Sequence record: MG655270.1 | Length of the DNA stretch: 64,000 bases | Direction: 5' to 3' (one strand) | Part shown: positions 2,093 through 32,317 of the stretch, piece by piece | How positions within the stretch are numbered: position 1 is the stretch's first letter | Layout: the number at the start of each line of letters is the position of its first letter | Translations under genes and position numbers: made by a program | Notes under the pieces: generated by a model | Told to the model about the DNA's origin: nothing | The model's database searches: none | The model's input: the letters and a program-made list of their open reading frames with translations, nothing else

Positions 2093-4015
2093 ATGACAGA
2101 TAGCACTACAGCGCAGAGCCCGACCGTGACGTTAGACCAAGTCATCGCGTCAGGCGGCCAGATTGTCTTCCTGGACAATGGGCAACTGAAAAGCTTTCCT
2201 GTCTCTCAGATCACTGACTTACTGAAAAGCGGCATGTCTACTGACGTGTTGGGTCAGGCTGATTCTCTGAGTATGTTTGGTCAAGTGGAGTCGTTCGAGG
2301 CTCTACGTAAGCTTAAGCCACAGAAAGAAGGTGCACGCATCTCTCTTCGTGGCTGGAACAAAGGCAGTTGTCTGGGTGGCGGTGAGTTCATTGGTCATCT
2401 CGTCACCAAAGATCTTAAAGCCCGTCCAGATGATGGCGGTATGATTGCAGCCGGTAGCGGGTTCTTCTGGGAACGTGTGTGCTCAGATTGCGGGCAAATG
2501 AATGTCACTCACTTCGGTGCGCTTCCTGGCGCCACTGCAGCGACTGATTGCGTGCCAGCAATGACCGCCATGCTGAACTGGAGTAATGCCAACGCTGTTG
2601 GTTTAGGAATTCAATTCCCAGCCGGTACTTTCTTCGCTTCCAGTTTAAAGTTCACCAAAGAGATCGGGTATTTCCGTATCGCCGGTAACCACATCAACTT
2701 TGGTTATTTTGCTAACACGGTATTGGTGAGTGACGCTACTGAAAACTTTATGTTGGATGTTGCGGCCCGTCGGGTTGAGTTGGCAAACATCATCTTCCGC
2801 GGTGTGAGTACTACTGAGAAGCCGAATAAGAAAGGGATCTTTAATAACATCGTCATTGGTGGTCAGTACTTCAACATGACCTGTGTGCGGTTTGAGAAAA
2901 TCGGCGGGACCTGTGTTAATCTGATCGATACTCTCGATACCAAGATGACACAATGGTACGCGTCACAATGTACTGGTGATGTGATCGTTAACAAATGGTC
3001 CGATCGTCAGGCAGGTGGCTGGAACCATACCACTGCTGTTGAAATGACCAACTTTAACATCCAGAAGTGTGTTGGTGGTAAAGTGTTTGACATGCAGCGC
3101 TGCGCTCAGTCGTTTATCACTAATGGCTGGATCGAGCACTGTGATGATCCAGGCGACCTGTCTAATGGTCAATGGACGGTAAATGGCCTGAGTATCGAAG
3201 ATTGTAAGAAACCATTAAAGGCCTCTTACGCTCGCTTTATTGAGATCCAGCGTAACCTGCAGTCCGGGTCACGAATCGACTACTCCATTGACCCAGAGCT
3301 CGAAGAGTGGCTGAGTGAATGGGAACGCGGTCGTCTGGATATCGCCAACCACGGCATCTTCATCGACGGTACCTTAGAGCCGGGTACGATCATGTCTCGC
3401 AACAAGCTGAGCAACAGCAGCGACAAAGCGAAATGGTTCCGGGTCGGTACCTGGTACAGCCCATCTGAAGGCGACTCCATTGACCTCAACCTGGTTGGTA
3501 CTGGTAACTTCCTGTCGGTCGCACCAAAGCTTGATGATATCGATGGTGTGCGTCAAGGTGGCGGTAACACCCTGATCCGTGTGCAGTTGAAGAAAGACTC
3601 CGTAGGTGCGACCTTAGAACCACATGGTTCAAGTCCCCTGCAAGCGGCGAAGATTGCCAAAGTCGGTGCCGGTAAGTTTGTGATCTACGCCCAGCTGAAA
3701 CCGTATACCCGTAATGTGATCCCGGTGATTGTTGCAACCGGTGCCACGCACTACGAAGCCGGTGTCTCTTATTACTTCCGTCCGGCGATTGCCTCGATGA
3801 GTGATGAAGAGATCGCAGCAGTGCCGGATGCGGTGGTGATTGCTGAACAGTGGTCGCTCGGTCAACTGGCCGGTGTGGGCGCCACTAACGAAGGTAACCT
3901 GATGCTGAAGAGTAAGATCGTTAACGATCACTTGCAGGTACAGGTCATGGTTAGCCAAGCACAATGGGCGAAACCAGAACTTCGTTATATCGAGCTGAAG
4001 AAAGAAGCCAAGTAA
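2093..4015 (+). CDS. AmsF/WceF-like beta-helix protein (putative EPS depolymerase / tailspike-like)
   Basis: 640 aa; GQVESF..LR.LKP..EGARI.LRGW..G...GGGEF...DDGG.IA N-terminal module followed by parallel beta-helix-like repeats, as recalled for Erwinia AmsF-type proteins. Confidence 0.65.
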   Translation: MTDSTTAQSPTVTLDQVIASGGQIVFLDNGQLKSFPVSQITDLLKSGMSTDVLGQADSLSMFGQVESFEALRKLKPQKEGARISLRGWNKGSCLGGGEFIGHLVTKDLKARPDDGGMIAAGSGFFWERVCSDCGQMNVTHFGALPGATAATDCVPAMTAMLNWSNANAVGLGIQFPAGTFFASSLKFTKEIGYFRIAGNHINFGYFANTVLVSDATENFMLDVAARRVELANIIFRGVSTTEKPNKKGIFNNIVIGGQYFNMTCVRFEKIGGTCVNLIDTLDTKMTQWYASQCTGDVIVNKWSDRQAGGWNHTTAVEMTNFNIQKCVGGKVFDMQRCAQSFITNGWIEHCDDPGDLSNGQWTVNGLSIEDCKKPLKASYARFIEIQRNLQSGSRIDYSIDPELEEWLSEWERGRLDIANHGIFIDGTLEPGTIMSRNKLSNSSDKAKWFRVGTWYSPSEGDSIDLNLVGTGNFLSVAPKLDDIDGVRQGGGNTLIRVQLKKDSVGATLEPHGSSPLQAAKIAKVGAGKFVIYAQLKPYTRNVIPVIVATGATHYEAGVSYYFRPAIASMSDEEIAAVPDAVVIAEQWSLGQLAGVGATNEGNLMLKSKIVNDHLQVQVMVSQAQWAKPELRYIELKKEAK

Positions 4016-6819: not shown

Positions 6820-7401
6820 ATGTCAAAGAAACTCGATACCCGTAAAAGTATGTTTCTGGCCTTGGTGTTACGCCACCGTCCTGAAGAGATCGGAATTACC
6901 CTGGATGAGAACGGCTGGGCTAAAGTCAGCGAAGTGATCACCGGGTTTACCTTTACCGGGCGTGGGCTCTCATTACCTGAGCTTGAGATCATCGTTGAGA
7001 CGGATGAGAAGAAGCGTTACCAGCTCTCTGACGATAAGTGCTATATCCGGGCCGTGCAGGGGCATTCTCACGAGAGCGTGATGAACATGCAGCTGGAAGT
7101 GACGACACCGCCAAAGTACTTGTATCACGGCACCCAACAGATCTCCTGTGAATCGATCGAGCGACAAGGGATCTTGCGCCTTAAACGTTTATATGTCCAC
7201 CTAACGGATGACATCGAAGCGGCTTGGCGCGCAGCAACTCGTAAACGAACAGCCGGTGCAGTCTACCGAATCGACACCGAGAAGATGACGCGGATGGGCC
7301 ATGTGTTCTATCGCGCTGAGAACGGGGTCTGGCTGGCGAAGCGCATTCCTTTCTCAGTCATTGAGATGGTTGATGCACATGACGAAGAAACAAGTACCTG
7401 A
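6820..7401 (+). CDS. kptA: RNA 2'-phosphotransferase (Tpt1/KptA family)
   Basis: LRH.PE..G..LD..GW, KKRY, IRA.QGHS, LYHGT, VHLT and R...NGVWL motifs. Confidence 0.92.
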   Translation: MSKKLDTRKSMFLALVLRHRPEEIGITLDENGWAKVSEVITGFTFTGRGLSLPELEIIVETDEKKRYQLSDDKCYIRAVQGHSHESVMNMQLEVTTPPKYLYHGTQQISCESIERQGILRLKRLYVHLTDDIEAAWRAATRKRTAGAVYRIDTEKMTRMGHVFYRAENGVWLAKRIPFSVIEMVDAHDEETST

Positions 7402-8815: not shown

Positions 8816-9304
8816 ATGAAAAATGATTTAAGCAGTTTCATGAAAAACACCATCTGTACACTGACTGTAGTTCAGCAGCGTATCGGCGGTTCCTTCTGCG
8901 CATTCCTCTCTGCCGAACACCACGCCGAAGCCATGGCTGATGACGCGGGTGGAAAACACGGCAATCACGATAACCTGGAGAATGGTCTCTTTAGCACTGA
9001 CTGGTTCCCGGTAGGATTTGGCGAAACACCCCGCGAGGCAGTCACCGATCTTGAAGAACGGGTAATCAATTTCACCAACATCTCAGGTGACCCCAAAGGT
9101 TGGGTTTATAACCATTTGTTCAACATGCTTGTTTGTCGTGTTTATCGTGAAACAGGCACAGGACACTATACCTTACAACCGGCTCTCTTTCCGGAAGTAA
9201 TCCCTGACTGGCTTAAACACTTTGATAAACTCGATGAAGATCTTGTTGATGATTTTATTAAGCGTATTCCCATCAGTCAAGATGATGGCTGGACCCCTCT
9301 ATGA
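8816..9304 (+). CDS. Hypothetical protein
   Basis: Start reassigned to ATG after gaggt; GFGETPREAV motif. Confidence 0.65.
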   Translation: MKNDLSSFMKNTICTLTVVQQRIGGSFCAFLSAEHHAEAMADDAGGKHGNHDNLENGLFSTDWFPVGFGETPREAVTDLEERVINFTNISGDPKGWVYNHLFNMLVCRVYRETGTGHYTLQPALFPEVIPDWLKHFDKLDEDLVDDFIKRIPISQDDGWTPL

Positions 9305-9402
9305 ATAACCTCTGGTTGTTGGCAATGGCCATTATTTACACAGCAGGGCTTATTGCCGCATGTGTGGTGGCACGGATGGCAGTCTTTCATCATGTGATTT
9401 AA
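9301..9402 (+). CDS. 33-aa membrane peptide (not in ORF track)
   Basis: MNNLWLLAMAIIYTAGLIAACVVARMAVFHHVI*; ATGA overlap with upstream stop. Confidence 0.55.
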   Translation: MNNLWLLAMAIIYTAGLIAACVVARMAVFHHVI

Positions 9403-9411
9403 GGGGTCATT

Positions 9412-9690
9412 ATGAGTAAAGGTACTTTGAAAGGCCTTGGTGTGGTCTTGGCGTGTCTTGTGATCGGCGTGTTGCTGTTTGTTTTTGCAACCTCTGTTCA
9501 AGCTGCTGATACACCGGTTAACCCCCACTGCGTCGCTATCACCAATGACAGTACAATTACCACCCAGTGCGACGACGGTACCGTGGTCATTACCAACACC
9601 GCAACCTCGACGGTGATGGTGTGCCATGTAAGTAAAGAAACAAAAGGTCTTCCGCAATGCGTGAAAGACCGGGTTGTCATTTCTAATTAA
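9412..9690 (+). CDS. Secreted/periplasmic small protein
   Basis: Signal-peptide-like N terminus ending VQA-A; four Cys. Confidence 0.6.
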
Positions 9691-9713
9691 CGTTATTCTT
9701 CGGAGCTACACAC

Positions 9714-10847
9714 ATGCAGTACAGTACCTTTAATACCACTAAAAACGATCAGATGGCTGAACCGATGTTCCTGGGTCAGTCGGTTAACGTCTCACGTTAT
9801 GATCAGCAGAAGTACCCCGCGTTCGAAAAACTGATTGAGAAACAACTTTCATTCTTCTGGCGCCCTGAAGAGGTGGATGTTTCGCAAGACCGTATCGACT
9901 TCCAGGGGTTACCGGATCACGAGAAACACATCTTCGTTTCTAACCTGAAATACCAAACCCTGCTGGACTCGATTCAGGGTCGTAGTCCGAACGTGGCCCT
10001 GCTGCCGATCTGTTCTATCCCGGAACTCGAAACCTGGATTGAAACCTGGGCGTTCTCTGAAACGATCCACTCGCGCTCATACACCCACATCATCCGTAAT
10101 ATCTTTACTGACCCCTCCATCGTGTTTGATGACATCGTGACCAACGAACACATCAAAGCGCGTGCTGAGTCCGTCACGGAGTATTACGACCAGCTGATTG
10201 AAATGACCATGTACCTCAACTTACTGGGTGAAGGTACTCATGTAATCAATGGTAAGAAAGTCGTGGTGTCGATGCGTGCTATCAAGCGTCTGGTCTACCT
10301 GTGCATCGTGTCAGTCAACGTGCTGGAAGCCATCCGCTTCTATGTCTCCTTTGCCTGCTCGTTTGCCTTTGCTGAACGCGAGCTGATGGAAGGCAACGCC
10401 AAGATCATTAAACTGATCGCCCGTGATGAAGCCCTGCATCTGACCGGCACTCAGCACATGATCATGTTGATGAAGTCCGGTGCTGACGATGCTGAGATGG
10501 CGGAAATCGTTAAAGAGTGTGAAGCAGAAACATACGCACTCTTTAAGGACGCTGCAGAGCAGGAGAAAGACTGGGCGAACTATCTGTTCCAGGACGGCTC
10601 GATGATCGGTCTGAACAAAGAGATCGTCTGCCAGTACATCGAATACATCACCAACATCCGTATTCGCGCCATCGGTTACGATGACATCTACGCCGGTGTC
10701 AAAGCTAACCCAATCCCATGGATCAACTCCTGGTTGGTTTCTGACAACGTGCAACAAGCCCCTCAAGAGTCAGAGATTACCTCGTATTTAGTAGGTCAGA
10801 TCGACTCAACTGTCGATGCAGATGCGTTTGATAACTTCGAACTTTAA
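9714..10847 (+). CDS. nrdB: Class Ia ribonucleotide reductase beta subunit
   Basis: [37 protein letters not shown] and PQE..SYLVG motifs; E. coli-like. Confidence 0.97.
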
Positions 10848-10904
10848 TACGTGATCAGCTTCACTCACGTAGAGGGCTGATCGCTAGCCCTTTATGGAGA
10901 GTGT

Positions 10905-11738
10905 ATGTCTGAGATAAAAGATAACCCGGATAACTGGAAAGTGATTCCGGGTTACTCACGTTATGAGATCAACGAAGTCGGCGTTGTAAGAAAGATACAT
11001 AACAAGAAGGTGATGAAACAATGGCTGCGTGGTAATTATACCGCCACTGCTATCACTTCTGATAATAAGTCAACTAGTAGAATAGAATCTATTCATATTT
11101 TACTGTGCCTTACATTTATTGGTCCAAAGCCCTTACCTGAACCTGGGCACAAACTTGTTACCGCTAACCACAAGGACGGTAACAAACTTAACAATGTGAG
11201 GTCTAATGTAGAATGGTTATCCAATTCTGGTAATATTCTGCATGCTTACAAGAACCGGCTAAATAAATCATCACAGCACCTGCGTCTAACCAATGTGGTC
11301 TCTGGTGAAGTTGTCGACCTGCATTCTTACCGCGAATTATCCAAATGGATGGGTAATCCTAACCTGCGCGGAAGAATGGAGTATCTGAAGTATCGTAACA
11401 GGCTTTATCAAGGCCAGTGGCGAATAGAACTTCTTGGCGAATCAGAGAAGTCTTCAGGGTCTCGTACCAGTAAGCAAGTATGCGTAATGGATGTGGCTAA
11501 ACGAATTGGATTGAGGGAGGGTGAGTTTGATACTTTCATCTTTAATTCCATGCATGACGCCGCAGCGGCATTAGGCGTAAGTCGCAAAGGTATTGGTCGA
11601 TCGATTAGTACCAAAGGACGCCATGTTGTAAATGGGTACGCTATATCGCTATCATTTGACGATATGGTTAATGTCACTTATGACAAAGCGTATGTGGAGA
11701 TTAGTCTTAAATGGGCGAAACTCAGGGGTCAGAAGTAA
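10905..11738 (+). mobile_element. NUMOD4-HNH-NUMOD1 homing endonuclease, intron-less insertion at nrdB 3' end
   Basis: WKVIPGYSRYEIN (NUMOD4), NHKDGNKLNN..SNVEW (HNH), FNSMHDAAAALGVS (NUMOD1); visibly more AT-rich than flanks. Confidence 0.88.
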
Positions 11739-11806
11739 GTTCTTATCTGGTCGGTCAGATCGACTCGAAAGTTGACGCCAACGATTTCGACGATTTCCAA
11801 CTGTAA
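11723..11806 (+). pseudogene. nrdB: Displaced duplicate of nrdB 3' end
   Basis: Encodes [27 protein letters not shown]; 19/27 aa and 57/84 nt identical to 10764-10847; no start codon. Confidence 0.9.
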
Positions 11807-11854
11807 CTGCCAGGCGCCCATGCTTCGGTGTGGGTGCTGTATAAAGGAGGATGT

Positions 11855-12451
11855 ATGGATGTAGGGCAACGCAATGTCCAGATCTCAGATCAGTATGAGA
11901 TTATCGGCATGGCGGGTGTAAACTACCTGCCTTTAAAGAAGTCTTCCTCCGATACATACCGCGTGGTGTTGTGTCGGCTGGATGGGTTAGGGCGTGACAA
12001 CACTAACTTGCATTATGACATCGATGATGCTTTTACTGACCACTACCGCTTTATCACCCAGCAACTCCCCTTTGCCGAATTTGATGGTAGGGATCGTGTC
12101 ACCACACTCATGCAGAACTGGCAAGGCAAAGCCACCACCGAGATCATTGACAATATCTTTAGTTCAATTGATCCCGATGCAGGTGCCTTTACGCTAGAAA
12201 GCATCAGTGTGGAAAACGGTTACCTTTATGGCGAGGTTAAATTAGCCAATAGCATTGTGGGAACGAACCTCTCCATGATGCTGAACCATCCACGTCCCGA
12301 TCAGGCGGCCATGATCTTTGGTGTTCGCTATCTGTCCGTCAATACCCGGCTTGACGGACTGCAATATGCTGATGTCAAGAAGATCTGTGCGTATGACGTG
12401 AATATCGTCAGCGAAACTGAATTAACCCAACGTCGTAACGGCGTGAAATAA
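11855..12451 (+). CDS. Hypothetical protein
   Basis: Strong RBS aaggagg; about 198 aa. Confidence 0.65.
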   Translation: MDVGQRNVQISDQYEIIGMAGVNYLPLKKSSSDTYRVVLCRLDGLGRDNTNLHYDIDDAFTDHYRFITQQLPFAEFDGRDRVTTLMQNWQGKATTEIIDNIFSSIDPDAGAFTLESISVENGYLYGEVKLANSIVGTNLSMMLNHPRPDQAAMIFGVRYLSVNTRLDGLQYADVKKICAYDVNIVSETELTQRRNGVK

Positions 12452-12485
12452 TGAACCGTTTAAAAGGTGCTGTGAGAACCTATAA

Positions 12486-13103
12486 ATGAAAAGAACAAAA
12501 AATATAAAGCTTGATCGTTTTCGTAAGGCATGGAAATTTAAGAAGGTTACGCTGGCATTGATGGTGGTAACCGGATCGTTTTACCTGGTGGCGTGCGATG
12601 AGCCGCGTGATCAGCAAGTGCAGATGTATCAGAATGCGGATGACTGTAGTCGAGCTCGCCCGCAAGACAAGCAGCGCTGTTCTGATGCGTACAATAACGC
12701 TCTGCGTGAATCTGAACGTACCGCCCCGCGTTACGGATCGAAAGGAGATTGTGATGCCGAGTTTGGCTCTGACAATTGCTACCAATCCACGGCTCATAGC
12801 CCGACCTGGATGCCGTATATGGGCGGATACATGTACGGGCGCAACGGGAGTTACGCACAGCCGTTGTATTCCTCACGGGTAACGTCAAGTCCTGCCTATC
12901 ACCGCTACGTCGATGCTGGCGGACGTAACTACGGCAGTGCTATCTCTGGACGCTCGATTAATACCACACGCAGCGCGTTAGCGCCCAAGCCTGTAGTCAC
13001 TTCAACCATTACCCGTGGCGGGTTCGGTGCAAGCGTGGCACACATGAGTAGTTCTCATTCTTCGTCCAGTCACAGCAGTGGCGGACATTCATCTGGCGGT
13101 TAA
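12486..13103 (+). CDS. ygiB: DUF1190 / YgiB family lipoprotein
   Basis: MKRTK.I...FRK.W; LVAC lipobox; YQNADDC, AYNNAL.E.ERTAP.Y, WMP.M.GY, TRGGFG match recalled E. coli YgiB. Confidence 0.88.
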   Translation: MKRTKNIKLDRFRKAWKFKKVTLALMVVTGSFYLVACDEPRDQQVQMYQNADDCSRARPQDKQRCSDAYNNALRESERTAPRYGSKGDCDAEFGSDNCYQSTAHSPTWMPYMGGYMYGRNGSYAQPLYSSRVTSSPAYHRYVDAGGRNYGSAISGRSINTTRSALAPKPVVTSTITRGGFGASVAHMSSSHSSSSHSSGGHSSGG

Positions 13104-30676: not shown

Positions 30677-32317
30677 ATGCACATTCAAGATATGACCTTC
30701 CGCATTCTCGTGGCTACCGATACCGCTGTTTCATCTACCGGGAACGTTTTGTATCTCGTTAATCAAAATGATGAGGTGGTCATCGAACACTCCATCACCG
30801 ATGAAACATTAAACGACATCAGTAATGGCGGGGATTACGATAGCGACGAGTTTAAGAAAGCGGCGGCGGCTTATCTGTATACTTGTTACTTGTATACGCG
30901 CGACTACCCTGAAGGTAAAGGTGCGGCAAGCTATGACTTCCATCGCACTGCAGGTATTATTCTGATGCAGTTTGTTGAAGAAGAAAGTCTTGGTGAATTC
31001 GAACCCGATGACTGGAACCTGGCAGAGGTCATGGTCCCTGGGTTACCAGAAAGCACCCGGGCCTTCGTATTCAGTAATGACGGCTCTGACATTAACATCC
31101 GTATCTATCGTCAAGACCGTGGGTTGGTGAACGATCGTCTGTTCACCTATGGTGATGAAGAGACGGTTCCTTCTATTGAAGAGATGCTTGCGCAATGGGA
31201 TGCTGATGTCGCTCCTACCGCCGATCCGGTACAGGAAAACGCAGCCAGCATCTCGTTTGGCGACGTCTCCTTTATTTACACCCTGGACATGAGCAAGGAA
31301 GGACGCGAGCAACGTAAAGCTATCATGCAGGTGGTAATTGGTGAGCGCCTGGTGGCACAGCAGAAAGTCCATGAGAACACCCAACCGCTCATGTATTACA
31401 TGATGGAAGTGTTCAACATGCTGGCGCTGCGCATGACAGTGGGTCCGGTAGAAGGCATTAATGCTCAAGACCGGGTAACCTTACTGACGGCTATCAGCGG
31501 GTTTGTGGGCGGGCATTTAGCGATGCCTGATCAGGTGCAAATCGCAGAAGGTATGCAGTACATGCACGAAGGTGCGATCAGTGATGAGGTAACCTACATG
31601 GTTTCACATCAGTTGATTGCCGACAACCATCTGCGGGCAACCTACCAGTTCAATACCGTGGTCGATGAAACGATGCGTCGTTCAATCACCATGTGTGATG
31701 AAGTGAGCTACCTGGAAAACCCGATGAGTCCACAGGCGTTCTTCACTGCGTATCAGGCAGACCTCAGTCGTGAGCTGAAACTATCTCGGTTGTTTGACAT
31801 CGCAATGATTGCGGCCATCGATCGGGGTCAGGGTCTCGGTAAAGATAACGAACTGCTGTACCGTATCAAAGAAGACATGAAGTACTTCAAAGAGATGACA
31901 CTGCATTCACCGGTGATCATGGGACGGAAAACGTATGAGTCGTTACCGAACCCGTTGGTAGATCGCCTGAACATCGTTATCACTACTGCTCCGACCAACA
32001 CCTATACCACCCGCTCAGGTGTGGTGTTCGTCAACAGCAAAGAAGAAGCCCTGCTGCACGCGAAGGGTTATCTGGCTGAACACGGCGGTGATAAGATCTG
32101 GATTATCGGGGGTGCGAGTATCTATGCTGCATTCCTGCCAGATGCCAAAGAGATCCACCTGACCACCATCGGTACTGAACGTGAAGATGCTGATACGTTC
32201 TTCCCGGAAGTTGATCTGCGTCAGTTTAACGCTGCACGTCAGTTTGAGGAAGACCAGGTGTTCGAGCGTGAAGGTGAAACCTTTGGCTACAACCGCGTCA
32301 TCCTGACCCGTAAGTAA
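30677..32317 (+). CDS. Unknown N-terminal domain fused to dihydrofolate reductase
   Basis: C-terminal about 170 aa: MIAA....G.G.DN.L..R..EDM.YF, VIMGRKT.ESLP..L..R.NIV, IIGG..IY, ADTFFP. Confidence 0.88.
   Translation: MHIQDMTFRILVATDTAVSSTGNVLYLVNQNDEVVIEHSITDETLNDISNGGDYDSDEFKKAAAAYLYTCYLYTRDYPEGKGAASYDFHRTAGIILMQFVEEESLGEFEPDDWNLAEVMVPGLPESTRAFVFSNDGSDINIRIYRQDRGLVNDRLFTYGDEETVPSIEEMLAQWDADVAPTADPVQENAASISFGDVSFIYTLDMSKEGREQRKAIMQVVIGERLVAQQKVHENTQPLMYYMMEVFNMLALRMTVGPVEGINAQDRVTLLTAISGFVGGHLAMPDQVQIAEGMQYMHEGAISDEVTYMVSHQLIADNHLRATYQFNTVVDETMRRSITMCDEVSYLENPMSPQAFFTAYQADLSRELKLSRLFDIAMIAAIDRGQGLGKDNELLYRIKEDMKYFKEMTLHSPVIMGRKTYESLPNPLVDRLNIVITTAPTNTYTTRSGVVFVNSKEEALLHAKGYLAEHGGDKIWIIGGASIYAAFLPDAKEIHLTTIGTEREDADTFFPEVDLRQFNAARQFEEDQVFEREGETFGYNRVILTRK

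Follow-up and report, generated by a model that had tools for sequence, protein, structure and literature searches.

Why should an essential phage gene be followed by a second version of its own 3′ end, with the gene for a homing endonuclease lying between the two? This arrangement is found at nrdB in a 64,000-nucleotide stretch of sequence record MG655270.1 (hereafter the window), where region 9714–11900 is 100% identical to Erwinia phage vB_EamM_Mortimer (hereafter Mortimer), a 274-kb Agricanvirus jumbo phage which infects Erwinia amylovora. A first-pass annotation, made from the sequence alone, proposed that an HNH endonuclease element had replaced the end of nrdB with a recoded copy of its own. 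Here we report that the nrdB end was indeed replaced, although the new end appears to be the ordinary nrdB ending of another phage lineage, brought in with the HNH gene, rather than a purpose-made recoding.

The nrdB open reading frame (ORF), taken from the ORF list, spans 9714–10847; it lies on the plus strand, like all of the features described here for the window. Its product matches Pfam Ribonuc_red_sm (PF00268, 1.1e-52) and aligns end to end with E. coli R2 at 671 bits, identifying it as the beta subunit of a class Ia ribonucleotide reductase (RNR). The C-terminal peptide of NrdB contains the tyrosine used in radical transfer and is the part that binds the RNR large subunit. The tyrosine in the tail motif S-Y-L-V-G-Q aligns with Tyr 357 of E. 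coli R2 (a chain of 376 residues), the Y356 of the mature protein, in agreement with the first-pass annotation. No nrdA was found within the 64-kb window. The two 84-nt copies of the nrdB end, at 10764–10847 and 11723–11806, are 959 nt apart and are identical at 57/84 nucleotides and 19/27 amino acids. Most of the 27 nucleotide differences fall at third codon positions (5, 4 and 18 at positions 1, 2 and 3). These values and all of the coordinates reproduced those of the first-pass annotation. In an ungapped scan of the upstream copy against both strands of the window, the background was 21.0 ± 4.0 matches (mean ± standard deviation) and the runner-up reached 40/84, so a chance origin of the 57/84 match is excluded. 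At the protein level, the second-best match was 8/27.

Direct counting indicated that 12 of the 19 codons specifying the same amino acid in both copies are changed and seven are identical, and the idea of a maximally recoded tail was dropped on this count. The Nei-Gojobori pS for the two tails exceeds 1, an artefact produced by multi-hit codons. The pattern appears to be ordinary, saturated synonymous divergence between lineages and not recoding at every site.

Which of the two endings is native to nrdB in this phage? Ea35-70, a sister phage without the HNH gene, matches Mortimer only in the flanks, up to 10754 and again from 11732. The resident part of nrdB (9714..10754), delimited by the Pfam, E. 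coli R2 and Ea35-70 matches, is 93–100% identical to Ea35-70 in 60-nt windows, and the Ea35-70 gene then continues directly into sequence corresponding to the downstream copy of Mortimer. With the Ea35-70 tail, the downstream copy shares 77/84 positions overall and 73/75 from 11732, while the upstream copy shares only 53/84, which is the outcome that the first-pass annotation had predicted for a sister phage. We rejected Ea35-70 as a deletion derivative because the 18 nt between its junction points are absent from Mortimer and recur in the phage MadMel and, at the protein level, in E. coli. Because Ea35-70 is therefore the empty site, 10755–11731 is an insertion into an Ea35-70-type allele. 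This segment, extending to 11739 if the microhomology at the junction is included, appears to be DNA imported from another phage lineage. It supplies nrdB with a new and probably functional 3′ end (10755..10847), which departs from Ea35-70 right after 10754 and includes the stop codon and the Y356-equivalent tyrosine.

The downstream copy (11723..11806) appears to be the resident tail, now orphaned; its homology to Ea35-70 is continuous from 11732, and 11723–11731 is ambiguous. Behind it lies the native post-nrdB hairpin (11813..11838, centroid stem), which is conserved after the nrdB stop codon in Ea35-70, MadMel and a further phage, AH06. The order of orphan tail, hairpin and next gene in Mortimer is identical to that of nrdB end, hairpin and next gene in all HNH-less relatives.

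The nearest match to the upstream tail is a metagenomic phage locus, L180 (72/84 nt, 25/27 aa). AH06, which lacks the HNH gene and has an nrdB 84% identical to that of Mortimer, also carries a tail of this type (65/84 nt, 23/27 aa). An HNH-less relative with the upstream-type tail had been listed in the first-pass annotation as evidence against replacement. Because AH06 is a distant relative, its tail points instead to the source lineage. Thus, the replacement stands and the recoding does not, and the foreign tail appears to have been dragged in by co-conversion with the HNH gene. The linked tail has been under purifying selection (dN/dS of 0.04 against the L180 tail), which provides indirect support that the hybrid gene with the imported tail is the expressed form.

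The full arrangement is common to eight records representing five phages, Mortimer, RAY, Special G, Bosolaphorus and Simmy50, at 98–100% identity. It is also present in L178, an Agricanvirus-like contig with an orphan tail as in Mortimer. The locus is therefore polymorphic at one precise site, empty in Ea35-70 and filled in the five phages and L178, within flanks that are 95–99.7% identical. Different tail peptides circulate among otherwise near-identical phages, as the first-pass annotation had suggested.

The two junctions differ in character. At the right junction (11732..11739), an alignment of Mortimer, L178, L180 and Ea35-70 revealed 8 nt of microhomology, in which the 3′ end of the HNH gene, with its stop codon, is the same as the intact Ea35-70 tail. 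All six orphan-bearing Agricanvirus-type genomes have this one right junction, and the end of the L180 HNH gene equals that of Mortimer apart from two differences there. On the left, Mortimer, RAY and Bosolaphorus turn foreign at 10755, Special G and Simmy50 retain resident-type codons further in, and L178 retains them through Glu-Val-Glu. At least three left boundaries therefore accompany one right junction among the six genomes, as in co-conversion with variable end points. The left crossovers come after a block of ∼50 nt that is almost invariant in all of the nrdB genes compared.

The HNH stop codon (11736–11738) does lie inside the downstream copy, as first annotated. The further claim that the HNH gene has no stop of its own is unsupported, because the stop falls within the 8-nt microhomology common to the HNH 3′ end and the target. 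In L180, where the HNH gene is 82% identical and there is no displaced copy, the gene ends with TAA at the same codon as in Mortimer, and the next gene begins 9 nt past it.

Between L178 and Mortimer, the tail differs at 27% of positions and the first and middle thirds of the HNH gene at 25% and 15%, compared with only 2–3% in the last third of the HNH gene, the orphan tail and the flanks. This pattern appears to be an exchange of cassette alleles. Flank identities among eight phages are reticulate (95–99.7%) and independent of which of three states the locus is in. For example, the right flank of Bosolaphorus, with a downstream HNH gene, is 99.6% identical to that of MadMel, with an upstream one.

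The inserted gene itself (10905..11738) is free-standing and encodes a 277-aa protein that, from its PHROG and I-HmuI profile matches, belongs to a recognised homing-endonuclease family. The ORF matches PHROG 59 (HNH endonuclease) at 6e-32. With a profile built from three family sequences, I-HmuI (1U3E) was the only solved relative (E 6.7e-7, residues 9–130). The sequence motif aligns to 1U3E, and residues N88, H89 and N101 are invariant in the family. The ORF is intact in all six genomes and has been under purifying selection, with dN/dS values of 0.09 (Mortimer versus L180) and 0.065 (L178 versus L180) and an overall range of about 0.07–0.2.

Upstream of the HNH gene is a 57-nt spacer (10848..10904), which is predicted by folding to form a stable hairpin (∼10862–10903; minimum free energy −25.8 kcal/mol, z −3.9) overlapping the HNH ribosome-binding site. 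The spacer is unchanged in the five phages and almost identical in L178 and L180, and no promoter-like site was found in its 57 nt. T4 endonuclease genes are under translational restraint (PMC2988022), and the hairpin may act in a similar way.

The HNH gene has its own start behind the nrdB stop codon. Non-coding sequence is confined to the 57 nt that precede it, and the upstream copy closes the nrdB reading frame intact. A search of Rfam at E≤1 over 9000–13000 identified no intron and no other RNA family. These observations agree with the intron-less element of the first-pass annotation; the gene appears to lie outside any intron or intein, and encoding by a group I intron is not indicated.

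Is the association of this HNH family with nrdB general? A search of 5.8 billion proteins returned only five other clusters. The four that we looked up (L178, L180, L181 and L182) all sit immediately downstream of nrdB. All of the close relatives found adjoin nrdB: five, among them that of Klebsiella phage N1M2, lie directly downstream of it, and those of the MadMel group lie directly upstream. In L180, the spacer and the nrdB tail are of the Mortimer type, but there is no orphan tail. L181 and L182, with HNH proteins 41–45% identical, likewise have no orphan tail. Profile-guided scans of viral and metagenome contigs added only generic NUMOD4/HNH relatives, whose N-terminal halves are about 30–40% identical. 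A search of 185,579 bacterial and archaeal genomes yielded no close HNH relative, and an exact search of IMG/VR for the spacer matched only phage RAY. When the 40-aa end of NrdB was used in tblastn, 2,260 places were found in 2,247 phage records. The phages described here account for 10 of the 13 extra places. The remaining three, outside the phages studied, may be further tail duplications or second nrdB genes.

N1M2 appears to represent an independent second orphan tail with a different junction. Its HNH protein is 46% identical to that of Mortimer by tblastn and 41% by alignment. In this phage, nrdB is followed by a 51-nt hairpin spacer and then by an HNH gene to which the orphan tail is fused in frame. 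The annotated HNH protein (positions 2998–3795 of locus L005) ends in 21 NrdB-tail residues, including the Ser-Ser-Tyr motif and the hydrophobic C-terminal end, and comparison with L182 shows that the tail takes the place of the last few residues of its own C-terminus.

MadMel (locus L002/L173, 441–2427 of L002) carries a different HNH gene, 42% identical to that of Mortimer, directly upstream of nrdB, and the same arrangement occurs in Deimos-Minion, Desertfox and Rebecca. The MadMel-type nrdB is a mosaic relative to Ea35-70, with 55–68% identity over the initial ∼210 nt and several later stretches, and 95–98% in other stretches. No orphan nrdB fragment was found at the MadMel-type locus. By analogy with T4 MobE, it appears to mirror the Mortimer event, at the 5′ rather than the 3′ end of nrdB. 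The “reversed order” of HNH and RNR genes that has been reported in part of Agricanvirus (PMC6690015) is better explained by two separate insertions, one at each end of nrdB.

The two independent orphan tails start within one codon of each other, 3–4 codons before the Tyr codon, which makes this region a candidate target for the endonuclease. The Leu codon following the Tyr is CTG in 8/8 tails that are HNH-free or orphaned (Ea35-70, three orphan copies, MadMel, AH06, Kc263 and Yubaba), and TTA or CTT in 8/8 HNH-linked functional tails. As evidence for an immune linked tail, this one codon contrast is suggestive only. We also observed that the chromosomal nrdB tail of E. coli (L185 3724–3807) matches the Ea35-70 tail (L001 2551–2634) at 68/84 positions and has CTG-type codons around the Tyr. 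Host-type nrdB genes may thus present the same candidate target.

The reading that we favor, at a probability of about 0.72, is that an imported, free-standing HNH gene entered nrdB by one-sided homologous repair coupled to a microhomology join and then spread by recombination. The source would have resembled L180, with the endonuclease gene between nrdB and the next gene, and was imported with its lineage's own nrdB ending and spacer. In a co-infection, the enzyme would break nrdB in an HNH-less phage within the tail, immediately 5′ of the Ser-Ser-Tyr-Leu-Val-Gly codons. Homologous recombination in the strongly conserved nrdB block immediately upstream would repair the left end. The right end, which has no homologous partner, would be joined through the 8 nt of microhomology that the HNH 3′ end has in common with the broken tail. 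Such repair would copy the donor tail, spacer and HNH gene, yielding a complete nrdB with the donor tail and leaving the recipient's own tail stranded as an untranslated remnant. The composite would then spread among Agricanvirus by two-sided homologous recombination, in which the orphan tail would provide homology on the right.

Several points weigh against this reading. That the HNH protein cuts, where it cuts, that the linked tail is immune and in what order the events took place are all inferred from sequence. L180 could be a secondary deletion of a Mortimer-type locus, which leaves the order of events unfixed, and the end of its HNH gene also resembles sequence upstream of the next gene. 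The 8-versus-8 codon contrast amounts to only about 4–5 independent lineages per side. Additionally, the orphan tail retains the CTG-type codons proposed as the target, so self-immunity would require either a site that extends left across the junction or tolerated self-nicking. As to the enzyme, the Pfam NUMOD4 and HNH_3 matches are just below cut-offs. An AlphaFold model from six sequences has a mean pLDDT of 62, with values below 50 at residues 38–123, the catalytic part, and is confident only in the C-terminal half. A fold search with this model ranked 1U3E first, at an E of 0.043, which is not significant. The I-HmuI-like assignment therefore rests on sequence profiles.

Some of these points would also fit a fossil, in which the HNH protein has lost the ability to cut this site, or never had it, and the composite passes down by vertical inheritance or moves only through general recombination when phages co-infect. 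Cutting is deduced rather than observed, the proposed target codons are still present in the orphan tail, and the reticulate flanks make it clear that general recombination is frequent in these phages. Yet the HNH ORF is intact in 6/6 genomes and has been under purifying selection over deep divergence (dN/dS of 0.07–0.09 against L180), the position next to nrdB is kept across lineages whose HNH proteins are only 41–51% identical, and the tail co-varies with the 5′ part of the HNH gene as a cassette. We therefore consider a fossil unlikely. The orphan tail might instead be a product and not a scar, acting as a free or enzyme-tethered peptide that docks onto NrdA. The in-frame fusion in N1M2, a 21-residue extension with no stops, is what such a product would look like, and in Mortimer and L178 the tail is covered by an ATG-started ORF of 31 codons (11711..11806, found by script and called as a gene in L178). 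This ORF is probably not functional. It is interrupted by one stop codon in RAY, and L180, L181 and L182 have no tail copy at all. The synonymous-only differences of the orphan tail from Ea35-70 are too few (two) to show selection, and conversion from functional tails suffices to explain them. A peptide product is thus very unlikely. If it were true, the tail peptide could place the nuclease at the nucleotide-synthesis/replication machinery, or interfere with the reductase of a rival or of the host.

Splicing would offer a different account of the two endings: a group I or other intron would remove the upstream tail, spacer and HNH gene and join nrdB to the downstream copy. Group I introns do occur in phage nrdB genes, that of T4 among them (PMC2988022), and the nrdB of Serratia phage Sureiya is interrupted by an ORF that, in the same kind of Rfam search as for Mortimer, has weak Intron_gpI matches on either side. 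At the Mortimer locus, just 57 nt are non-coding, the upstream tail brings nrdB to an intact end at a stop codon and has a dN/dS of 0.04, and Rfam at E≤1 returned no match either here or over the N1M2 locus. Moreover, L180 has the tail, spacer and HNH gene but no downstream copy to splice to, and we give the intron only the slightest chance. In Sureiya itself (L176 2501–4595), a “winged helix-turn-helix” ORF divides nrdB into two ORFs, with Intron_gpI scores of 19–20 bits on both sides, and nrdB is uninterrupted in its sister Yubaba. The Sureiya interruption probably represents an intron that carries a homing endonuclease and occupies a third nrdB site. The equal length of the two Mortimer copies, their shared strand and the 959 nt between them might also bring to mind a local tandem duplication of the nrdB end in this lineage, with the HNH gene landing between copies that later diverged. 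The copies, however, differ at 32% of positions while the flanks are 98–100% identical to Ea35-70. The identity matrix also contradicts such an origin, since the upstream copy is nearer to L180 (72/84) and AH06 (65/84) than to its own neighbor (57/84), and the chance of a tandem duplication is close to nil.

How does one-sided entry of an imported HNH gene compare with known systems? The fungal-mitochondrial precedent cited in the first-pass annotation is real (PMC3630166): mobile endonuclease ORFs with C-terminal duplications are found in atp6 of Allomyces macrogynus and in atp6, atp9, cox2 and nad3 of Glomus sp. As in Mortimer, the endonuclease ORF lies in the 3′ part of a conserved gene, with a foreign in-frame C-terminus upstream and the native C-terminus displaced downstream and almost identical to that of a sister taxon. 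The corresponding matches to Ea35-70 are 53/84 upstream and 77/84 downstream. In both, the copies share about 63–68% of nucleotides and are far more alike as protein. The Mortimer case differs in that it is a phage genome with an HNH enzyme, rather than LAGLIDADG or GIY-YIG, and in that the endonuclease is encoded separately, beyond a stop codon and hairpin, instead of as an in-phase fusion. For Mortimer, a duplication-free, source-like locus (L180) and a microhomology junction are also visible. This kind of arrangement is therefore already known from fungal mitochondria, and Mortimer adds a phage case. A search of full-text literature found no description of such a 3′-end duplication for phages.

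Among phages, T4 MobE is a free-standing HNH endonuclease between nrdA and nrdB, which nicks nrdB at the codons of a radical-transfer residue, W48 (PMC2790892). The Mortimer gene is likewise free-standing beside nrdB, with a putative target at radical-transfer codons (Y356), co-conversion of flanking nrdB sequence, and a hairpin or terminator that may temper expression. In contrast, MobE is upstream of nrdB, nicks its 5′ region and leaves no orphan fragment, and is in these respects nearer to the MadMel-type HNH gene. I-HmuI, the HNH nicking endonuclease of Bacillus phage SPO1, is matched by the family profile over its N-terminal strands and HNH motif, but it is intron-encoded and 174 aa long, while the 277-aa Mortimer protein has a longer, DNA-binding-like C-terminal half. 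One-sided homing with illegitimate double-strand-break repair and microhomology junctions has been described for the T4 td intron (reviewed in PMC2988022). There too, homology exists on one side only and the other junction falls at microhomology, which in Mortimer is 11732–11739. The td events were shown in engineered crosses, whereas we infer those at Mortimer from natural sequences.

Two other ORFs of the window were noted. A few genes upstream of nrdB, the ORF at 6820–7401 is annotated in relatives as an RNA 2′-phosphotransferase (KptA/Tpt1-like). At 30677–32317, a 546-aa ORF has a DHFR domain in its C-terminal third only (residues 375–525), and its N-terminal 370 residues gave no Pfam match at 1e-5.

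Taken together, these loci form a natural series in which the stages can be viewed side by side: the empty site in Ea35-70, the source-like locus in L180, the composite in Mortimer and its relatives, exchange in L178 and in-frame fusion in N1M2. For these phages, nrdB trees and annotations include foreign gene ends as well as orphan fragments. In this group, selfish endonuclease genes appear to shuffle the C-terminal peptide of an essential enzyme, which bears the radical-transfer tyrosine and docks onto the partner subunit, among near-identical phages.

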